64,000 nucleotides of DNA, taken from sequence record MN794232.1; one strand, given 5' to 3'. The position numbers and the translations under genes are program-made. How positions within the stretch are numbered: position 1 is the stretch's first letter; the number at the start of each line of letters is the position of its first letter. Positions 31,662 through 59,725 of this stretch are shown here, one piece after another. A model generated the notes under the pieces. It saw nothing but the letters and a program-made list of their open reading frames with translations, did not search any database and had not been told where the DNA came from.

Positions 31662-31669
31662 TATAAATA
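31662..31669 (+). promoter_or_regulatory. Late promoter TATAAATA
   Basis: Exact T4 late consensus directly after a terminator, 21 nt before ATG 31691. Confidence 0.85.
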
Positions 31670-31690
31670 CTTTCATTTAGAGAGAAAGCT

Positions 31691-32572
31691 ATGATTATAT
31701 TCGAAGACATTAATCCGCTTTGTGAAGCATTTGACCGCCCAGCACCTTATAAATGGGATTCTATGTACAACGAAGCTCGATTTACGGTTGGGAACGTGCA
31801 GTATGTCGCGTTTATCAAAGATAATGACACAGCAAGAGGTTTAAGTCTGTATGTGGCATTCCAGCGTCGTGATAACGCAACTGGTCAATGGACTCACTCA
31901 CTTGCTAAAGGCTCGCCGAAAGACGCAATGACGGTATTGAGCACAATACTGGCAGCAACATTTGACAAGGCATCAAAAGTTGAACCGAATGAAATTACAT
32001 TCAGTGCATTTCGTGACGCAGATGACGAAGACGCAAATAAGCGTTTTAGACTGTACAAGCGTATGGCTGAGCGATACGCAAAGCAAATGAATTACACAGT
32101 TCATATCACTGGTAATAGCTTCACACTAACAAACAACAATCCACCTAAGATCAGACGACTCCACAATGACGGCATTCACAAAGAAGATGGACTTACATAC
32201 GTAAATTTCCCTGCTTGTAATGCCTTTACATGGGCGAAGATTTTCTGGCTGGACAATGACGGCGATTACATCAAACTTACATTACCGCACGGTCGTATTC
32301 ACATTGTGAAAAAATCAAGTGACGTAATTGAAATCGAAGCAATTACACCGAAAGGTCGTTTTGACAATCTAGATTCAGATGAGATTTGGATGTCGATGTT
32401 ATCTGATATTAAAGTGAAAGCTAGAGGCGGAAGCACATTTACTATATCAGAGAAAGGCGCGATTTTAGATGCGGGTGATATGATTTTGTGTGAGCAAGGT
32501 ACGTTTTATTACCTAAGTTCTGAAGATGATTTCAAAGAAATCTGGGGATATGAAATCGACTCAATTGAATAA
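31691..32572 (+). CDS. Late hypothetical protein; N-domain shared with ORF 58271
   Basis: MIIFEDINPLCE start; ARF..G...F...A..V.S.(I/V)L...P.E..FSA...R..LY pattern. Confidence 0.8.
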   Translation: MIIFEDINPLCEAFDRPAPYKWDSMYNEARFTVGNVQYVAFIKDNDTARGLSLYVAFQRRDNATGQWTHSLAKGSPKDAMTVLSTILAATFDKASKVEPNEITFSAFRDADDEDANKRFRLYKRMAERYAKQMNYTVHITGNSFTLTNNNPPKIRRLHNDGIHKEDGLTYVNFPACNAFTWAKIFWLDNDGDYIKLTLPHGRIHIVKKSSDVIEIEAITPKGRFDNLDSDEIWMSMLSDIKVKARGGSTFTISEKGAILDAGDMILCEQGTFYYLSSEDDFKEIWGYEIDSIE

Positions 32573-32602: not shown

Positions 32603-34267
32603 TCATGGTGTCAGAGGACTACGTTCTTTCACTTTGCGGTCTTCGTCGATTTCAATATCAACAACTCGCATGAAGTTAGCGACTTCGGTTAGCTCATGTA
32701 AACGGTCTTGCTTTTTGTAAGCAGACAGAACACCGATTTTCGCTGAATTGTCTTTGACTTTCAAGCGAATCACCGCATCGAACTCGGACAATTGAACCAC
32801 GTCGGCTTCGAACATCGTATTACGGTTGATGATGAAATCACAATCGCCTTTCTTCCCGTATTTGCCTGGTGCTAGAACAGGTAACCCGTCAGACTCAATA
32901 ACAAACACAACGTTCAGTTTTCTGTCAGATTCGAGCATATCACGCATAATTGATTTGCTATTCTTGCTCGTCGCGTTGACGATTGTTTTCGCGCTAGATT
33001 CAACAAAGTCACATGCAACAAATGGATCAGTTGATGATGTGATGAACGCAGTTGAAACGAACGCGCCAGATTCAAGAATCGAGCCGACACGTTTGCTAGA
33101 CATTTCACAACCACGATATAGCGTAACGCCATTCGACACCTTACCAGCTTCATAGAAAGCTCGGTCTAAGCGAGAAATTGCATCCCTAACCTTTTCATCA
33201 CCGGTGCCGTGAACTAACTCTTCATTGACCTTCCACGAATAACGAGACGCAGAATAGCGAGAAATTGCAGCTTGAGTAAGAGAAGATAGACCAGCATATG
33301 AATCTTCTTGCATCATTTGCAACGATAATTGGTCATATTGCTTCTCAAACGCACGTGAGCGGGCTTTTAACAGTGCGCCGCATACTTCGCTAATCAAGTG
33401 AGCTTTAACGCCCTCAGAGCGTGCTGAAGCGATATATGGGTTCATTCGTTCTGCTACATCAACAAGGTCTATGTTCATATCAACAATTGCTTGAGCAGCG
33501 TTAGCCAATTTCGTTAGACCGTCAGTTGCTGCCGCTTCTGTTAATTGCTGCTTGATAGATGCACTGACCCGCGCTTCCATTTGTGGCATTTGCAGAATTT
33601 GATTCGGGACGCGAACGGCAGGGTTTTCTTCTACCCATTGACCTAGAACATCATCTTCATAATCATCATAGCCAACATCGGCAGTCACGATGATTGTTTT
33701 CTTGCTTGAAATGTCAGTCTCTTTCGCCATTTTAGCAGCAAGAATATTGATTGTTTCTTCGGTTGCTTCGACCAGTTTATCAGCGTCATAGCCAGGTTTC
33801 GTGATCACGAAGAAGCTGAAATCTTCAGCCATTTCATTATCACCGACGTTCATGATTTTAGTCGTTTCGCAGCCGTATCGAAGTTTCTTGAACAGCGTTT
33901 TAACACGCATGTCGAACATTTTACCGCTGCCGATCTTTTGAATACGCATAGACACAGCGTTGGCGCGTGTTTTCAACATGAAACTTTGGATCAATTTAAC
34001 CAATGTTTCTTGAAACTTTTCTTGGTCTCCCATGTCACGAATGGTTAATCCGCCTTTTTTGCCTCGCATTGCTGAGACAGTACAGAACCACGAACGTTTT
34101 CCGCGATTTCCGATGTTTGATTTTGTTTTAGTTGTGAACGAAACTACAACGTCACGAGCTTCTCCTTTCATATCGATCACAAAGAATTTGTTTTCTTTGG
34201 TCGAGCGAGCCGGATAGTAGTCGTACGTTGCGCTCATGTTTTCAGTTAATTGTTGAAATCCAATCAT
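32603..34267 (-). CDS. alt: Alt-like ADP-ribosyltransferase (internal head protein)
   Basis: AISRYSASRY..VNEEL, ISRLDRAFYEAG, VTLYRG, AFITSST, VLAPG...DCDFIINRN mirror the T4 Alt ART domain; N-terminal L-T-E; opposite strand as in T4. Confidence 0.8.
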   Translation of the reverse strand: MIGFQQLTENMSATYDYYPARSTKENKFFVIDMKGEARDVVVSFTTKTKSNIGNRGKRSWFCTVSAMRGKKGGLTIRDMGDQEKFQETLVKLIQSFMLKTRANAVSMRIQKIGSGKMFDMRVKTLFKKLRYGCETTKIMNVGDNEMAEDFSFFVITKPGYDADKLVEATEETINILAAKMAKETDISSKKTIIVTADVGYDDYEDDVLGQWVEENPAVRVPNQILQMPQMEARVSASIKQQLTEAAATDGLTKLANAAQAIVDMNIDLVDVAERMNPYIASARSEGVKAHLISEVCGALLKARSRAFEKQYDQLSLQMMQEDSYAGLSSLTQAAISRYSASRYSWKVNEELVHGTGDEKVRDAISRLDRAFYEAGKVSNGVTLYRGCEMSSKRVGSILESGAFVSTAFITSSTDPFVACDFVESSAKTIVNATSKNSKSIMRDMLESDRKLNVVFVIESDGLPVLAPGKYGKKGDCDFIINRNTMFEADVVQLSEFDAVIRLKVKDNSAKIGVLSAYKKQDRLHELTEVANFMRVVDIEIDEDRKVKERSPLTP

Positions 34268-36033: not shown

Positions 36034-36273
36034 ATGATAACGATATACACAATTCCTAACTGTGACGGCTGTCGTCACGCTATCGCCCTCTGTAAGTTCA
36101 AACACGTTCCGTATACTGTAATCGAGTTACAGTCACAGACTGACATCGACCAATTACATCAAAAGCTTGGTGATAATCGCAATATTCGCGTTCCTCTTGC
36201 TATGCATGGTGACACATACATCGGTCACCTGCCTGAATTGAAGAAATGGGTTGATGAACAGACGTATAAATAA
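36034..36273 (+). CDS. Glutaredoxin
   Basis: YTIPNCDGC, RVP...TYIG. Confidence 0.85.
   Translation: MITIYTIPNCDGCRHAIALCKFKHVPYTVIELQSQTDIDQLHQKLGDNRNIRVPLAMHGDTYIGHLPELKKWVDEQTYK
36265..36272 (+). promoter_or_regulatory. Late promoter TATAAATA
   Basis: Exact consensus upstream of the gp24-like gene. Confidence 0.8.
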
Positions 36274-36331: not shown

Positions 36332-37228
36332 ATGACTGTATCTAATAGTAACGGTTTACCAGACATTGTTACTGTTCAAAAACGACTATATCCGCTGATC
36401 TTCACGGAAATCGTTTCTGAACAGCCAACAAAGCAACCCGTTGCAACTGCTTACGGCTTTAAAGCTGTACCTGAAGCTGATGACGGCAGCGGCTGGACAC
36501 AATTTGGGTTTAGACTTGATCGTTGGTATGCTCAAGTTGAATCTTCAAAAATGAAGACTGAAATCTCTCTTGAAACGCTGCAAGATATGCAAGCACTTGG
36601 TGTTAGTAATTCAGTGATCGTAGACTCACTAGCTGACCAAATTGCTGATGAAATCAATACGTCGATTATCGGTGCGTTGAATAGCATTTCAACTGTTGGT
36701 ACTGCACTAACCCTGACGGGTAATACTGATTTTGAAAAAGGTCAAGATCTTTATACGAAAGTACACCTAGCAGCGTCTGAAATTGAAAAAACAACTGGTT
36801 GTAAAGGCACATATGTCGTTGCGGGCGGTAAATGTTTCGGTTATTTGACTGGTTGTGGTGTTGTACAGCGAGTTGGCGAATCTGACGTTTACAAAGCATG
36901 GTCTGGTTTATACATCGTACACGACAAATACGCAACAAGCGATTACGTGACTGTAGGTGTTAAGAAAGACATGGGTGATTATGAAATCTCAAGTCTAGTA
37001 TTCAGCCCGTATCAATTCGACCAAGCGAATGACGGCGCGATTGCTTATCAATACAAGGGCACTGACCCGAAATCATTCCACCCTGTGTATGGTGTTATTG
37101 CTCGTTACGCACTAACTGTTCCGCCACTAGAAGACAATCAGACTGGTGCAGTTGAGATTGATTGGTCGAACTTAGGCGCGCTTGCTAATAGCTCAAAGCT
37201 TTCATACACATACGCAGTAACAGTATAA
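36332..37228 (+). CDS. 24: gp23/gp24-family capsid vertex-like protein
   Basis: EQPTKQP...AYG, SLETLQD, DEINTSII, LVFSPY, DPKSFHPVYGVIARYAL are HK97-fold gp23/24 motifs; only 298 aa. Confidence 0.7.
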   Translation: MTVSNSNGLPDIVTVQKRLYPLIFTEIVSEQPTKQPVATAYGFKAVPEADDGSGWTQFGFRLDRWYAQVESSKMKTEISLETLQDMQALGVSNSVIVDSLADQIADEINTSIIGALNSISTVGTALTLTGNTDFEKGQDLYTKVHLAASEIEKTTGCKGTYVVAGGKCFGYLTGCGVVQRVGESDVYKAWSGLYIVHDKYATSDYVTVGVKKDMGDYEISSLVFSPYQFDQANDGAIAYQYKGTDPKSFHPVYGVIARYALTVPPLEDNQTGAVEIDWSNLGALANSSKLSYTYAVTV

Positions 37229-37236
37229 GGTGTGAC

Positions 37237-37749
37237 ATGAAAAATCATTATGTAGATAATAAAGCTCTATACGCATCACTATGCGAATGGAAAGACGAAA
37301 TGAATAAGAATCCTGATGCGACAATCCCAGTACCTGATGTGGTCGCGATTAGCATCATGAAGATTAGCGAGAACCTGTCTCGCCGTTACAACTTTAGTGG
37401 TTACACTGCTACGTGGAAAGAAGAAATGATTGGTGACGCAATCGAACATTGCTTGCGTTACATCAAAAATTTCGATACTGATAAGTACAACAATCCACAC
37501 GCTTACATCACTCGTATCTGTTTCAATGCGTTCGTGCAACGCATTAAGAAAGAAAGAAAAGATACAGCGATTAAATATAAAGTATTCTTATGTGATTCGT
37601 CTAACTACACAGTTGAAGGCGAAGAGACTGATTTCGAGTTTCTTCAGCAAATGTTAGAGCGTGTCAATTCTTACGAGTCTGGCAAAACGGCTAAAGCTCA
37701 ACCAGATGAACAGAAAGAACCACTTAACTTACAGAAATTTTACGATTAA
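37237..37749 (+). CDS. 55: Late sigma factor gp55
   Basis: HYVDNK, NFSGYTATWKEEMIGDAIE, NPHAYITRICFNAFVQRIKKE. Confidence 0.96.
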   Translation: MKNHYVDNKALYASLCEWKDEMNKNPDATIPVPDVVAISIMKISENLSRRYNFSGYTATWKEEMIGDAIEHCLRYIKNFDTDKYNNPHAYITRICFNAFVQRIKKERKDTAIKYKVFLCDSSNYTVEGEETDFEFLQQMLERVNSYESGKTAKAQPDEQKEPLNLQKFYD

Positions 37750-37758
37750 GGAATTAAC

Positions 37759-39204
37759 ATGTTAGGTAACTTTGACTCATTTCTGAGTGAAAATCGCCGT
37801 CAAACTCAGGGTGGAAAAATCTACCCTAAGTTTGGTCAAGTTATTGTTGAGCTAGGCACTGCATCTACTGAGTTCAGCAAAGGCAAAGGCGTTGAAACAA
37901 CTATCGACATGATGGAGAAGGCAAATGAGCTTAAATCTATCATGAACACTAAACTGGCTGAAGATAAAAACGTCGATGAGAAACATTTCGACATCAATCT
38001 GAGCGAGAACGTAAGCACGGTTAACCTGCTTATGGAAAACGAATTCTTGGCGCTGCCAGCTCATGAGCTACAGCAAGTCAAATCAATGATCATGTGTACT
38101 GAAGCACGTCTTCCTAGCATCGTGATTAAAGGTGGTTCATTGGATCAAGTTGTTGCTGAAGCAACGAAACTAGGCTACAAGAAAAGTGACATTCACGTTG
38201 TTTTCCCGATGCGTGAAATGAAAATCAATCTTGCTGACTCTGACAAGCTTGTTATTGAATCTCTATCAATTGACGACAATTCAGCGTCTGAGATTCTTTC
38301 AATGGCTGAAAACATCGAGCTTGGTGACGTTTATGTGACTGTAGAATCGGTTGATTCTAAGGCTGAACTGTCTGAAATCACCGAACTGAAGATCAAATCG
38401 GGTAAAAATGCGCTGACACTAGCTGCACTTAACCGCAAGATCATGGATCAGTTTATCGTGAAAGAAGCGAAAGAAGTTTCATATGCACGTGAGCGCAAAG
38501 AAGACACTGGTCTCCCAATGCTTGAAGGTTTCAAGGCATACGATCTGAAACAGAACATCACCATGATTGAACATGCTCAGAACGCATTCACAAAAGAGAT
38601 TACAGTAGCTCCGCTATCTTCGACTGCGTGGCAAAATCTTGTTGATGTTAAAGAAGCTTACTTCGATAACGGTTGGAAACTGAAGCACAACAATACAAGC
38701 ATCGTTCTAACAAACGCTGAACACGCAATGCGTGCTGGTCGTGTTTGTGAAGAATATCGAGTCGAGCTATCTGAAGCAGGTTATCCTCTTCTTGATATGA
38801 TCGCAATGATGGAAAGCAAGGGCATGACTCGCTTTGATTGTAAATCATTTGCTGAAGCAATGATGAAATTCGACGGCTGTGTTACGCCAGAGCGCCAGAC
38901 TGTGACTGCATTTGTTACTGAATCGGCTAGTAATCGCGTATTCCATCCGAACATTATGTCAAGCCTACGTCCTGTGACTGAAATGGTTGATGATGTTGAC
39001 GGTCTAATTCGTGCGCTTGCTAATGATCAGTTCAGCACGTTCAAAATCGGACAATCATTCTCTGAATCAATGCTTGACCAAGAAACGCTATACTCTATGA
39101 TGGAAAGCATTGTTTCTGATGGTGTTGATGTATCAGTGGACGGGACTTTGATTGAATTCAAAGTGAATGCAACCAATTACCTAATCAATATCGACATCAA
39201 ATAA
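37759..39204 (+). CDS. Hypothetical protein with eroded P-loop-kinase-like N-domain and many L/I-x-E sites
   Basis: MLGNFDSFLSE start; GGKIYPKFGQVIV and LGYKKSDIHVVF resemble a T4-like kinase family but GKS/T is absent. Confidence 0.75.
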   Translation: MLGNFDSFLSENRRQTQGGKIYPKFGQVIVELGTASTEFSKGKGVETTIDMMEKANELKSIMNTKLAEDKNVDEKHFDINLSENVSTVNLLMENEFLALPAHELQQVKSMIMCTEARLPSIVIKGGSLDQVVAEATKLGYKKSDIHVVFPMREMKINLADSDKLVIESLSIDDNSASEILSMAENIELGDVYVTVESVDSKAELSEITELKIKSGKNALTLAALNRKIMDQFIVKEAKEVSYARERKEDTGLPMLEGFKAYDLKQNITMIEHAQNAFTKEITVAPLSSTAWQNLVDVKEAYFDNGWKLKHNNTSIVLTNAEHAMRAGRVCEEYRVELSEAGYPLLDMIAMMESKGMTRFDCKSFAEAMMKFDGCVTPERQTVTAFVTESASNRVFHPNIMSSLRPVTEMVDDVDGLIRALANDQFSTFKIGQSFSESMLDQETLYSMMESIVSDGVDVSVDGTLIEFKVNATNYLINIDIK

Positions 39205-39212
39205 GGTGAAAC

Positions 39213-39860
39213 ATGAAACAATTTTGTAATTTTTTAGCTGAAGTTCAGAAATACAGTTCAGCGGCTACGTCGATTCGCGGTAAAGAAGTTGCTGCATTGG
39301 TTAAATTGTTCAAGTCAGGCATGTTCGTGCCTGGCGGAACAGCACTTGACTACGGCGCGGGCAAATACGGTCGTAATGCTGAATTTCTTCGCAGTGAAGG
39401 CATTCGCACTTACGCATACGACAAATTCAATGGGACATCGGCTGATGGTTGGGGCGCAGTTAGCTTAACTATCCCGAATGGTGAGACATTCGATACTGGC
39501 TTCACGTCATACGTATTGAACGTTGTTCCTGAAGAAATCGAAGCAGAAATCATCCGTGATGTTGAGTCTCGTACACGCGGTAAAGTGTTCCATATTACAC
39601 GCGGTACTGACATCACTCAGACTGTATTCAACGTAATCAGCGGTAAGAGCAAGAATGACGTAATGATGCAATTCATTGCTCAAGAATATCCAGAGATTTA
39701 CGGTCAGATTGTCGCGAACGGTGGGACTAAAGAATTGGCTAAAGAGATTGCAACTCGTGGAGTTGTAACAGCTAAAGACAGTTTCCAACGTATTCCAGAC
39801 CTATCGAAATACGGTTACAAGAAATCTGGTTCAGGCGCTTCAGTCGTTTGGACAAAATAA
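39213..39860 (+). CDS. Class I SAM-dependent methyltransferase with CTS-like N-terminus
   Basis: ALDYGAGKYGRN (motif I), YAYD, SYVLNVV; starts MKQFCNFLAE. Confidence 0.8.
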   Translation: MKQFCNFLAEVQKYSSAATSIRGKEVAALVKLFKSGMFVPGGTALDYGAGKYGRNAEFLRSEGIRTYAYDKFNGTSADGWGAVSLTIPNGETFDTGFTSYVLNVVPEEIEAEIIRDVESRTRGKVFHITRGTDITQTVFNVISGKSKNDVMMQFIAQEYPEIYGQIVANGGTKELAKEIATRGVVTAKDSFQRIPDLSKYGYKKSGSGASVVWTK

Positions 39861-39877: not shown

Positions 39878-39913
39878 AAAAGGGTTGCTTCGGCAACCCT
39901 TTTTGCGTATTAT
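39878..39913 (+). promoter_or_regulatory. Fused terminator/early-promoter cassette
   Basis: AAAAGGGTTGC-TTCG-GCAACCCTTTTT; TTGCTT-17nt-TATTAT. Confidence 0.88.
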
Positions 39914-57623: not shown

Positions 57624-57807
57624 ACGACTATACCCACATGAAGTTGATCACGAACTACAGCGTCGCGACGTTTGGTTGAAAGCGTGGTGTCATACTGCTA
57701 ACGCTAATGACTGTAAAGAAACATCAACTGCAACAAACTATGCTGATGCGTGTCTGGCTGCATTTGACCGTCGTTTTGAAGCTATCGAGGTAATTAAACA
57801 TGACTGA
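57616..57807 (+). CDS. Hypothetical protein (start corrected)
   Basis: ATG 57616 with RBS AAGGA. Confidence 0.65.
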   Translation: MAKRLYPHEVDHELQRRDVWLKAWCHTANANDCKETSTATNYADACLAAFDRRFEAIEVIKHD

Positions 57808-58198
57808 TTTTGATATTGCACTACTTAATCCGACTATCATCAAGTCAACTGAAATCGCAGGTCATAACTTCGGTAACAAAGTTATCGAGATTGTGAGTGA
57901 TCACATTGACGGCGATGACATGGATAACTTCATTGAATTCATCGTTGAAGCTGAAGCACGAGAGCGTGAGCACCCGTATGTAGGTCATTTCTACGGTGAT
58001 TTGTTAGTCATGAGCTTGTCTGAAGACCGTCATCACTTCGAAGCACGTATGTCTGACGAAGACATTGCGAATCTGACAATCACGATTGATGATGCATTCA
58101 TTCAATACACAAATGAGTTTATTGAATGGTACAAGCAGAAAGCGCGAGAGTTCTTCGATGATGATGAATTGGAATTCATCATTGAAAACGAAATCTAA
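57800..58198 (+). CDS. Acidic hypothetical protein
   Basis: 132 aa, RBS GAGGT. Confidence 0.75.
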   Translation: MTDFDIALLNPTIIKSTEIAGHNFGNKVIEIVSDHIDGDDMDNFIEFIVEAEAREREHPYVGHFYGDLLVMSLSEDRHHFEARMSDEDIANLTITIDDAFIQYTNEFIEWYKQKAREFFDDDELEFIIENEI

Positions 58199-58270: not shown

Positions 58271-59725
58271 ATGAAACTGTTTACTGAATTTTATCAAGAA
58301 GTTCGACTTGACGAAATCTCAGATCGTGCGAATATCGACATTGATTGGGATTGGGGTCATGAGAACGGTACGGGAGAAACTTCGGCGAGATTTGACGCAG
58401 CCGGTGAGAAATTCCAAGTTAGCGTTGACGAGAGCAACCCGGGTTATTTCACGATCACATTCCAGAACTCTAGTGGTTATTCTCAGACTGGTAGAGCGGG
58501 ACACTCTGCGGCTGCTGTATTCTCTGGCGTGTTGACGACTTTACGTGAATTCACCGAAACGTACGAAGAAGAAATGGGCATGAAGCCATATGAATATGAC
58601 TTCAGCGCAGCGTACGAACTACCGCGAAATCACGACTATTACTCATTGGTTAACAATCGTCGCGAGGCAACTCGTTTAGATGAAGAAAGCAAGAAAAAGC
58701 TATTGAAAGACTTGATTTCTCGACCTATGCTTTACTACGCACTATCGTTGACGTTTGGTAAAGAATACGGCTATTCAACTGAAATTAGCGACCGTTGGCT
58801 TGCTCGTCTTGCAGGGGGCGCGAATGATTTCCGTTCCGTTCGTAAGAACGTGACTCGAAGCATTCTGTCGATGAATGACAACGACGTTAACCAAGCGTTG
58901 ATGAACATGAGCGGTTCTGTTTCGTTCACTCTTACCAACGAAAACGAACGTCCTAGCAGCTACGACACAGCATTCGGTGGTGGTCCGTCTCTTGAAGACT
59001 ACGTTGATGAAGCAGACCAATACCAAATCGAAGCGTGGATCAATGATGGTCGTGAAGATGAAATCATCGAACATGCTGATTGGCAAACTCTAGTTCGCAT
59101 TGCGGAATGGGGTCTGATGCACGATGAACTGATTTTCCATGATGATGAAGACGTTCGAAACGCGGTAATTCGCACAGACTACGAAATGGGCGAGAAACTA
59201 GCCGAATCGCCTGAGTGGGAACATCGTAAACAAGCTGCTGAAAATGGTTTTGGCATTTGGGATCTTGTACTTGACTCTGACGAAGACGTGCGCGAAGCTG
59301 CATGGGACTGGTCGTTTGAAAATGACGATGCTGATACTCGAATCACATACGCGAAACGCTACGAAGGCAACTTCGGTCGCGCAATGGCTGAAGACGTGTG
59401 GGATCGCATGATCGACGATTCAGATGACTATGAAGAGCGTCAATACGTAGCTGAACAAGGTTATCGTCTTGAAGAACTTCTAGCAGACCATGACGAAGAC
59501 GTGCGTTCTTCTGCAATCAATGCTGTATTCACGGTAATGGGTCTGGATGGTCGAGAAGCGGCTGAGTTCTTGATGGAAAACTCTGAACCTTACCAAGAAG
59601 AAGTGTTTGAATACGCGATTAACGGTAACTTCGGTCCATCTTTCGATGAAGCACTAATCGAAATTGCTGAAGAAAACGGCGTTGATGTTTCTGAGTACAA
59701 AGACGAAGAAGACGAAGACGAATAA
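58271..59725 (+). CDS. Very acidic late protein: shared N-domain plus HEAT/LRV-like repeats
   Basis: MKLFTEFYQE start; three DEDVR repeats; D/E-rich tail. Confidence 0.8.
   Translation: MKLFTEFYQEVRLDEISDRANIDIDWDWGHENGTGETSARFDAAGEKFQVSVDESNPGYFTITFQNSSGYSQTGRAGHSAAAVFSGVLTTLREFTETYEEEMGMKPYEYDFSAAYELPRNHDYYSLVNNRREATRLDEESKKKLLKDLISRPMLYYALSLTFGKEYGYSTEISDRWLARLAGGANDFRSVRKNVTRSILSMNDNDVNQALMNMSGSVSFTLTNENERPSSYDTAFGGGPSLEDYVDEADQYQIEAWINDGREDEIIEHADWQTLVRIAEWGLMHDELIFHDDEDVRNAVIRTDYEMGEKLAESPEWEHRKQAAENGFGIWDLVLDSDEDVREAAWDWSFENDDADTRITYAKRYEGNFGRAMAEDVWDRMIDDSDDYEERQYVAEQGYRLEELLADHDEDVRSSAINAVFTVMGLDGREAAEFLMENSEPYQEEVFEYAINGNFGPSFDEALIEIAEENGVDVSEYKDEEDEDE

Follow-up and report, generated by a model that had tools for sequence, protein, structure and literature searches.

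A candidate head-loaded methyltransferase with a T4-type capsid-targeting leader in KVP40-like Vibrio phages

The stretch of DNA analyzed here (the window; 64,000 nucleotides (nt) of sequence record MN794232.1) corresponds to Vibrio phage VH1_2019, with 100% identity at identical coordinates, and is 98.7% identical to KVP40, a T4-related Schizotequatrovirus. At positions 39213-39860 (+), it carries the counterpart of KVP40.0066, a gene annotated as "hypothetical protein." The open reading frame (ORF), which begins with ATG and encodes 215 amino acids, is as an initial annotation of this DNA had given it. Our analysis indicates that KVP40.0066 is probably a stand-alone class I methyltransferase dependent on S-adenosylmethionine (SAM), carried as cargo of a T4-type internal-protein route. 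Head loading of this methyltransferase is supported by sequence statistics, the anatomy of the protein family, the structure of the operon, and proteomics of particles of a phage that encodes an ortholog. Targeting by the leader, its cleavage, and the head-interior location, ejection and activity of the KVP40.0066 protein are what we infer.

The T4 capsid-targeting leader is the textbook route by which proteins are loaded into phage heads. Its known natural cargo is small, consisting of internal proteins, among them IPI, which inhibits restriction. A distinct case is Alt, an enzyme that is packaged too and has a similar propeptide that is cleaved off. A methyltransferase would therefore extend this known route to a new type of cargo.

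The first 10 codons of the gene (39213-39242, +) encode MKQFCNFLAE, a putative capsid-targeting leader that ends in the L-x-E motif of prohead-protease sites, with cleavage predicted after E10. T4 IPII and IPIII both start with MKTYQEFIAE, as read from the T4 record. Mutagenesis of this T4 capsid-targeting sequence (CTS) assigned targeting mainly to residues 4 and 7, and processing to residues 8 and 10 (PMC9026906). At these four functional positions the KVP40.0066 leader is conserved (F, F, L and E), and its M1, K2 and A9 match the T4 leader exactly, making five identities overall. Residues 2-10 of each Met start of at least 40 amino acids, in all six frames, were compared with the T4 leader by ungapped BLOSUM62 scoring. 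KVP40.0066 ranks first among the 2,625 Met starts of KVP40, with a score of 21 (mean -7.2, standard deviation 6.3), which bears out the parallel with the T4 CTS that the initial annotation had drawn. KVP40.0097 is second in the same ranking and KVP40.0290 is fifth.

A looser regular expression for the leader found the annotated starts of KVP40.0065, KVP40.0066, KVP40.0097 and KVP40.0308, together with one internal Met in KVP40. As a control, the leader expression was applied to 74.5 kilobases (kb) of T4, where it picked up IPII and IPIII as well as an internal Met in uvsW; IPI, which has a longer leader, was missed. In a structural model of KVP40.0066 predicted with AlphaFold (AF2), residues 1-20 form a low-confidence helix detached from the core. 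The other components of such a route are encoded by KVP40 as well: gp67, gp68, gp21 and gp22, comprising the prohead protease and the scaffolding core, are annotated at KVP40.0359-0362, outside the window.

The leader also appears as a distinct unit across the protein family. The distance from Met1 to a conserved TSI anchor has a bimodal distribution. Where the anchor lies at positions 20-26, 62 of 71 proteins have [LIVMF]-x-E within the first 14 residues. By comparison, none of the 28 proteins in the shortest class, which begins at the core, has this motif. The leader class carries 8-12 additional residues of the form M-K/R-h-x-x-h-h-x-E, as in MKLSELLEE, MKLTELFEK, MRINELLEA, MKSTEFITE and MKQFSEFLSE. 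The class that starts at the core includes distant relatives; an example of such a start is M-T-Y-Y-E-G-P-P-L-E. The leaderless branch nearest to KVP40 in core sequence begins M-D-K-Q-K-Y-S-S-A-E-T-S-I-N, a start that nearly coincides with the product expected from cleavage of KVP40.0066 after E10 (V-Q-K-Y-S-S-A-A-T-S-I).

Two fusion proteins, P0123 (MKSTEFITE) and P0089 (MKSIDFIPE), have the leader at their extreme N-terminus, followed by an extra domain of ~130 residues and then the methyltransferase. Vibrio phages 1.081.O and F86 have orthologs of 49% identity in which the linker next to the leader is rewritten but the leader pattern persists. Because the leader is modular, stays N-terminal in fusions and is kept despite a rewritten linker, a structural role for it within the methyltransferase fold appears unlikely. 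The family leaders resemble propeptides that the T4 record gives for known gp21 substrates (gp24, MAKINELLRE; Alt, MELITELFDE; gp22, MLKEQLIAE), and also the N-termini of scaffold proteins encoded beside family members. As far as sequence comparisons can tell, the reading of this N-terminus as a modular T4-type targeting and cleavage leader is supported.

Evidence from phage particles is provided by a 2025 study of Schizotequatrovirus, in which particles of phage 6E35.1a were analyzed by tandem mass spectrometry (MS) (PMC12028318). The 6E35.1a ortholog of KVP40.0066 (QZI87378.1, also MYOV011v1_p0106 or VP6E351A_0103) has 216 amino acids and 80% identity to it, falls in PHROG 14016 and carries the leader MAKSLNDFLTE. 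VP6E351A_0103 was detected in the particles with 31 and 79 counts (PMC12028318 Table S4; the supplement gives counts, not peptides) and with an abundance of 55 (Table S8). The authors list the protein as hypothetical and do not discuss it; its gene is core in 18 of 18 phages and has a dN/dS ratio of 0.018 (PMC12028318). For comparison, the counts in the same particles are 90 and 145 for gp24, 122 and 233 for the Alt-like protein, 165 and 280 for the portal, and 17 and 28 for the prohead protease, while evident cytoplasmic carry-over (single-stranded DNA (ssDNA)-binding protein, dUTPase, ligase and thymidylate synthase) stays at or below 25 (PMC12028318). Per residue, the signal of VP6E351A_0103 is near that of the portal, gp24 and the Alt-like protein. 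The initial annotation had staked its proposal on the protein not being absent from virions, and a close ortholog is thus found in particles. A literature search for a KVP40 virion proteome or a paper on a CTS-bearing methyltransferase found the 6E35.1a study alone.

The other leader-bearing KVP40 proteins were mapped to 6E35.1a orthologs via PHROG. KVP40.0097 corresponds to VP6E351A_0134 (58 and 109 counts in particles), KVP40.0290 to 6E35.1a 0357 (18 and 4 counts) and KVP40.0308 to 6E35.1a 0380 (14 and 15 counts). With KVP40.0066 included, four of five leader-bearing proteins have particle-detected orthologs, compared with 94 of 442 proteins overall (p ~0.008, for a set of five that was chosen partly post hoc). 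The leader offers an easy sequence criterion by which ejected effectors may be sought in T4-like genomes; in KVP40 it picked four proteins whose orthologs were also detected by independent particle proteomics.

Behind the leader, residues 11-215 (39243-39857, +) constitute the predicted mature class I SAM-dependent methyltransferase, an assignment based on the AF2 model, Foldseek comparisons and family invariants. The model has a mean predicted local distance difference test score (pLDDT) of 90.2 and a predicted template-modeling score (pTM) of 0.86. A Foldseek search of PDB gave 199 matches at E ≤ 1e-3. The best 50 of these are class I SAM methyltransferases, save one mislabelled entry, with template-modeling (TM) scores of 0.33-0.54, and are mostly small-molecule enzymes or structural-genomics proteins. 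Structure matches in BFVD agree with this fold, and the model contains the seven-stranded methyltransferase sheet in an alpha/beta fold. Thus, the class I SAM domain that the initial annotation had read from the sequence is upheld by structure prediction and structure comparison, and we regard the modeled fold assignment as secure. The TM scores are modest, and the substrate is not transferable from these matches.

The peptides quoted in the initial annotation were located in the protein: MKQFCNFLAE at residues 1-10, LDYGAG at 45-50, YAYD at 67-70 and SYVLNVV at 99-105. LDYGAG (39345-39362, +) is motif I, the SAM-binding glycine loop, and is locally TehB-like. In an alignment of 42 homologs, its residues D46, G48, A49 and G50 are invariant, as is D70, the motif II acid that closes strand 2. 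Further invariants are specific to the family: T19-S20-I21, R54, N103, H127, R130, Q192 and R193. SYVLNVV is the customary motif of strand 4 and the following helix in the class I fold. The initial annotation had drawn a tie between YVLNV-type motifs and putative methyltransferases of DNA phosphorothioation loci. This part of the proposal found no backing, as no PADLOC family matched at E ≤ 1, and a Dnd-associated methyltransferase was rejected on that ground.

Sequence searches of Pfam, NCBIfam and PDB with the KVP40.0066 protein and with a family profile gave no significant match; the sole signal was local similarity to TehB and flavivirus NS5 at motif I (E 0.1-1). The Pfam family PF13489 (Methyltransf_23; gathering threshold 27 bits) does not match KVP40.0066 even at E ≤ 10. 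Some relatives narrowly exceed that threshold (28.8-32.5 bits); another, with 25.3 bits, does not reach it. The protein belongs to PHROG 14016, a function-unassigned family. Its homologs in cultured phages are confined to KVP40-like Vibrio phages (49 records). In metagenomes, 230 related proteins were found in 90% clusters (E ≤ 1e-3) and 407 among 50% representatives, and leader-bearing relatives are numerous there. The isoelectric point (pI) of KVP40.0066 is about 9.0-9.1, compared with a family median of 8.5, and its single Cys is located in the leader.

The position of the gene is consistent with late expression alongside a head gene. KVP40.0066 is the last gene of an operon that lies between an inferred T4-type late promoter box and a terminator-like hairpin. 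The box, TATAAATA (36265-36272, +), matches the consensus ~60 nt upstream of gene 24; exact matches occur three times in the window, and only this one falls within 35.5-40.3 kb. The operon's first gene is gene 24 (36332-37228, +), which encodes a short head-vertex protein of 298 amino acids identified by Pfam Gp23 (6e-47), PHROG 138 and the KVP40 annotation. It is followed by gene 55 (37237-37749, +), encoding the late sigma factor (PHROG 234, 1.6e-58, and KVP40 annotation), and by a KVP40.0065-like gene (37759-39204, +). The latter encodes a function-unassigned protein of 481 amino acids (PHROG 14490) whose leader-like N-terminus, MLGNFDSFLSE, was found by the regular expression; in the 6E35.1a tables it carries a "Defense?" mark.

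The gaps between genes 24, 55, 0065 and 0066 are 8-9 nt, and each Shine-Dalgarno sequence is overlapped by a stop codon. That of KVP40.0066, AAGGTGA (39203-39209, +), overlaps the TAA stop of the KVP40.0065-like gene, and a TAAGG-N-ATG junction recurs at the 24/55 and 55/0065 boundaries. This arrangement suggests that the genes of the operon may be translationally coupled. The hairpin (39878-39903, +), 18 nt past the KVP40.0066 stop, resembles an intrinsic terminator, with an 11-bp stem, a UUCG loop and then a U-run. Its RNA fold has -16.7 kcal/mol (z = -3.85 versus shuffles), and a simple terminator scanner missed it. The gene order itself is unlike that of T4: gene 24 is 298 codons here and 427 in T4, and it stands behind its own late promoter box, directly before gene 55 and distant from gene 23. 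Uncultured relatives of KVP40.0066 lie in T4-like genomes, three times adjoining gp20, gp21 or gp23. Across 16 family loci, no conserved neighbor gene was found that might hint at the substrate.

We propose that the KVP40.0066 protein would be synthesized late, co-transcribed with head-vertex gene 24. MKQFCNFLAE would act as a T4-like capsid-targeting sequence and bind the prohead scaffolding core, and the gp21-type prohead protease would then cut the leader off after L-A-E. The mildly basic mature enzyme would remain beside the DNA in the head, in a copy number roughly in the tens. On infection, it would exit with the DNA and use host SAM to methylate its target before phage genes are expressed. 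An injected methyltransferase was also the proposal of the initial annotation, of which the fold, the leader and the occurrence of an ortholog in particles hold, and the Dnd or phosphorothioation link does not.

Several observations weigh against head loading, and most of them would fit an ordinary cytoplasmic phage methyltransferase that is not packaged, with leader likeness due to chance or a structural helix and an MS signal due to carry-over of an abundant late protein. We judge this explanation unlikely. The 6E35.1a particles were precipitated with polyethylene glycol and not purified on a gradient, such that abundance-driven carry-over is possible, and the particle list does contain a few cytoplasmic enzymes at low counts, including thymidylate synthase, dUTPase and ligase, as well as ssDNA-binding protein and spanins (PMC12028318). 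VP6E351A_0102, the ortholog of the adjoining KVP40.0065, is missing from the 6E35.1a particle MS list despite its similar leader; this protein may be broken down in the prohead, or packaging may require more than the motif. An early, sigma-70-like promoter upstream of nrdH might read through and give early cytoplasmic expression of KVP40.0066. T4 internal proteins are made both early and late. Leaderless family members exist, and one of them (L023) lies in a T4-like context, so the leader is not the sole mode of use. A restriction of leaderless relatives to non-T4-like genomes could not be demonstrated, as the ±10-kb flanks are mostly uninformative and L023 is contrary. In addition, the leader expression was loosened after KVP40.0097 had been seen and is partly tuned to the data, for which reason the a priori BLOSUM62 ranking was substituted, and KVP40.0066 itself falls below all Pfam and NCBIfam methyltransferase thresholds. 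However, the counts of the ortholog are above those of every obvious contaminant and, per length, equal those of known head proteins such as the portal and gp24 and of the Alt-like protein. The protein also matches the T4 CTS better than any other start in the genome, and orthologs of the runners-up among real genes, KVP40.0097 and KVP40.0290, are found in particles too. The modular leader, N-terminal even in fusions, and co-transcription with head gene 24 also speak against this explanation.

It is very improbable, in our estimation, that KVP40.0066 modifies DNA to counter restriction by base or 7-deazaguanine methylation, in analogy to P1 DarB or DpdM, whether it is packaged or not. KVP40-type phages do carry 7-deazaguanine DNA modifications and dPreQ1 that is methylated in traces (PMC10516641), P1 DarB sets a precedent for a DNA methyltransferase that is injected (PMC5512222), and the protein is basic. 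However, a regular-expression search found none of the motifs (D/N/S)PP(Y/F/W), PCQ/PC(Q/K) or ENV in KVP40.0066, in agreement with the lack of DNA-methyltransferase motifs noted in the initial annotation, and the 215-residue model has no extra domain and no space for a target-recognition domain. A classical DNA methyltransferase was rejected for these reasons. The dPreQ1 methyltransferase of KVP40-type phages is DpdM, a Cys-rich DUF3109 protein with CxxxCxxCC metal sites (PMC10516641). Identity with DpdM was rejected because it is a different protein and KVP40.0066 has just one Cys, which lies in the leader. By structure, its closest neighbors are methyltransferases of small molecules, no match to PADLOC or to restriction-modification types was obtained, and the gene is unlinked to the deazaguanine gene cluster. 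Equally doubtful is a head-assembly enzyme that methylates structural or internal proteins of the phage, or otherwise acts in the producing cell, and whose presence in virions is a by-product with no role after ejection. Co-expression with gene 24, the position of some relatives beside gp20, gp21 or gp23, and fusion or adjacency to a domain of a virion protein (KVP40.0371, described below) would suit this explanation. It does not account for the absence of a conserved structural partner gene across loci, the variable gene position that is typical of accessory or effector genes, fusions to GNAT and to large multidomain proteins, which recall those of delivered effectors, or the many relatives in which the leader is missing.

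For a head-loaded methyltransferase, we favor as target either an anionic molecule (nucleotide-like, or nucleic acid such as RNA) or a host protein over DNA bases. This preference is based on the lack of DNA-methyltransferase motifs and a target-recognition domain, on the small-molecule enzymes among the nearest folds, and on the invariant Arg/His/Gln cluster. Fusion partners of the family include GNAT acetyltransferases, DUF5661, DUF5710, a 1,110-residue multidomain protein and the N-terminal domain of KVP40.0371. Homologs of the GNAT, DUF5661, DUF5710 and function-unassigned fusion domains were not found in KVP40. KVP40.0371 (KVP40 231409-232371, -) is a particle protein (11.5 counts) whose N-terminal ~160 residues are fused to the methyltransferase family in metagenomic proteins P0126 and P0145. 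This domain has an invariant HHKWL-x-V-x-DDY-x-GF motif, and it is also encoded two genes downstream of a leaderless methyltransferase copy on a 211-kb contig (L030, 10964-11404). The domain's model is mediocre (pLDDT 74) and gave no PDB fold match, so that it offers no lead to the substrate.

A bolder reading, which we put forward tentatively and hold to be rather less than probable, is that KVP40.0066 is the first non-DNA methyltransferase known to be delivered from a phage head, a CTS-loaded effector that disarms or reprograms a host component by means of host SAM. Conceivable targets, proposed just as tentatively, are an immune signaling nucleotide, tRNA or rRNA, or a defense or transcription protein. 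The same reading holds that the leader marks a wider, so far unrecognized set of ejected enzymes in marine T4-like phages. This set might, again speculatively, include the ADP-ribosyltransferase (ART)-like KVP40.0290, the HEAT-repeat protein KVP40.0097, and GNAT-methyltransferase fusions. If the target is indeed a component of host immunity or gene expression, this would be a new kind of counter-defense in the first minutes of infection. The logic of the leader would also reach well beyond T-even coliphages, taking in marine Vibrio phages of large size and numerous T4-like phages that are uncultured. As with T4, the leader could also serve to load chosen proteins into KVP40-type heads.

Among the closest known systems, KVP40.0066 resembles the T4 internal proteins IPI, IPII and IPIII in its ten-residue N-terminal leader with an (L/I)-x-E prohead-protease motif at the end. 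Other shared features are a phage that encodes gp21, gp22, gp67 and gp68, the presence of the protein (here an ortholog) in particles, and variable cargo behind a conserved leader. However, the KVP40.0066 cargo would be an enzyme of Rossmann-type SAM fold, whereas T4 loads small basic proteins that associate with DNA, or an inhibitor of restriction. KVP40.0066 is also a core gene under strong purifying selection and not hypervariable, it shares a late operon with genes 24 and 55, and its cleavage and ejection are predicted. The proposed mode of action also has a parallel in T4 Alt, a head-borne enzyme that enters with the DNA and uses a host cofactor to modify a host target. Alt has a propeptide of the same style, and an Alt-like protein is likewise present in Vibrio phage particles. 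The predicted reaction is methyl transfer from SAM, in contrast to ADP-ribosylation from NAD by Alt, and KVP40.0066 is about one-third of Alt's size.

DarB of phage P1 provides a precedent for a head-packaged methyltransferase that is active at entry. It differs in being a huge N6-adenine methyltransferase (NPPY) with a superfamily 2 (SF2) helicase, neither of which features is present in KVP40.0066, and in being loaded by the Dar system and not by a CTS. With TehB and Methyltransf_23 proteins, KVP40.0066 shares the fold and motifs I-II (LD-x-G-x-G...GRN...L...G..V.A.D); several homologs exceed the PF13489 threshold, and the best structural neighbors are small-molecule methyltransferases. This sequence similarity is limited to the SAM-binding half, however, and the substrate is not transferable by homology. 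Invariant TSI, HITR and FQR motifs set the KVP40.0066 family apart, as does a helical segment inserted between strands 5 and 6.

Some of the other proteins with leader-like N-termini have features of their own. The KVP40.0097-like protein (58271-59725, +; 484 amino acids) is very acidic, contains HEAT repeats and starts with MKLFTEFYQE; it is likely a second leader-loaded head protein. KVP40.0290 (KVP40 156073-157191, +; outside the window) has 372 amino acids, the N-terminus MKNLKSFMEE and a weak PARP/ART-like Pfam match. KVP40.0308 (KVP40 172169-172375, -; also outside the window; MSEKTFDKFMSE) has 68 amino acids, is Lys/Ala-rich with a pI of 10.2, and thereby resembles the basic internal proteins of T4. 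Within the KVP40.0096 ORF (57800-58198), 40 codons from its start, an internal Met followed by DNFIEFIVEA (57920-58198, +) also fits the leader pattern; the fit is either fortuitous or reflects an alternative start.

Two further genes in the window encode proteins whose orthologs are found in 6E35.1a particles. One is a gene for a 293-residue protein (31662-32572, +; PHROG 6387), preceded at a distance of 22 nt by a second exact TATAAATA box; the ortholog of this protein has 16 and 61 counts. The adjacent gene encodes the Alt-like ADP-ribosyltransferase (32603-34267, -; PHROG 802), which, with an ortholog that is abundant in particles (the 122 and 233 counts given above), starts with MIGFQQLTE.

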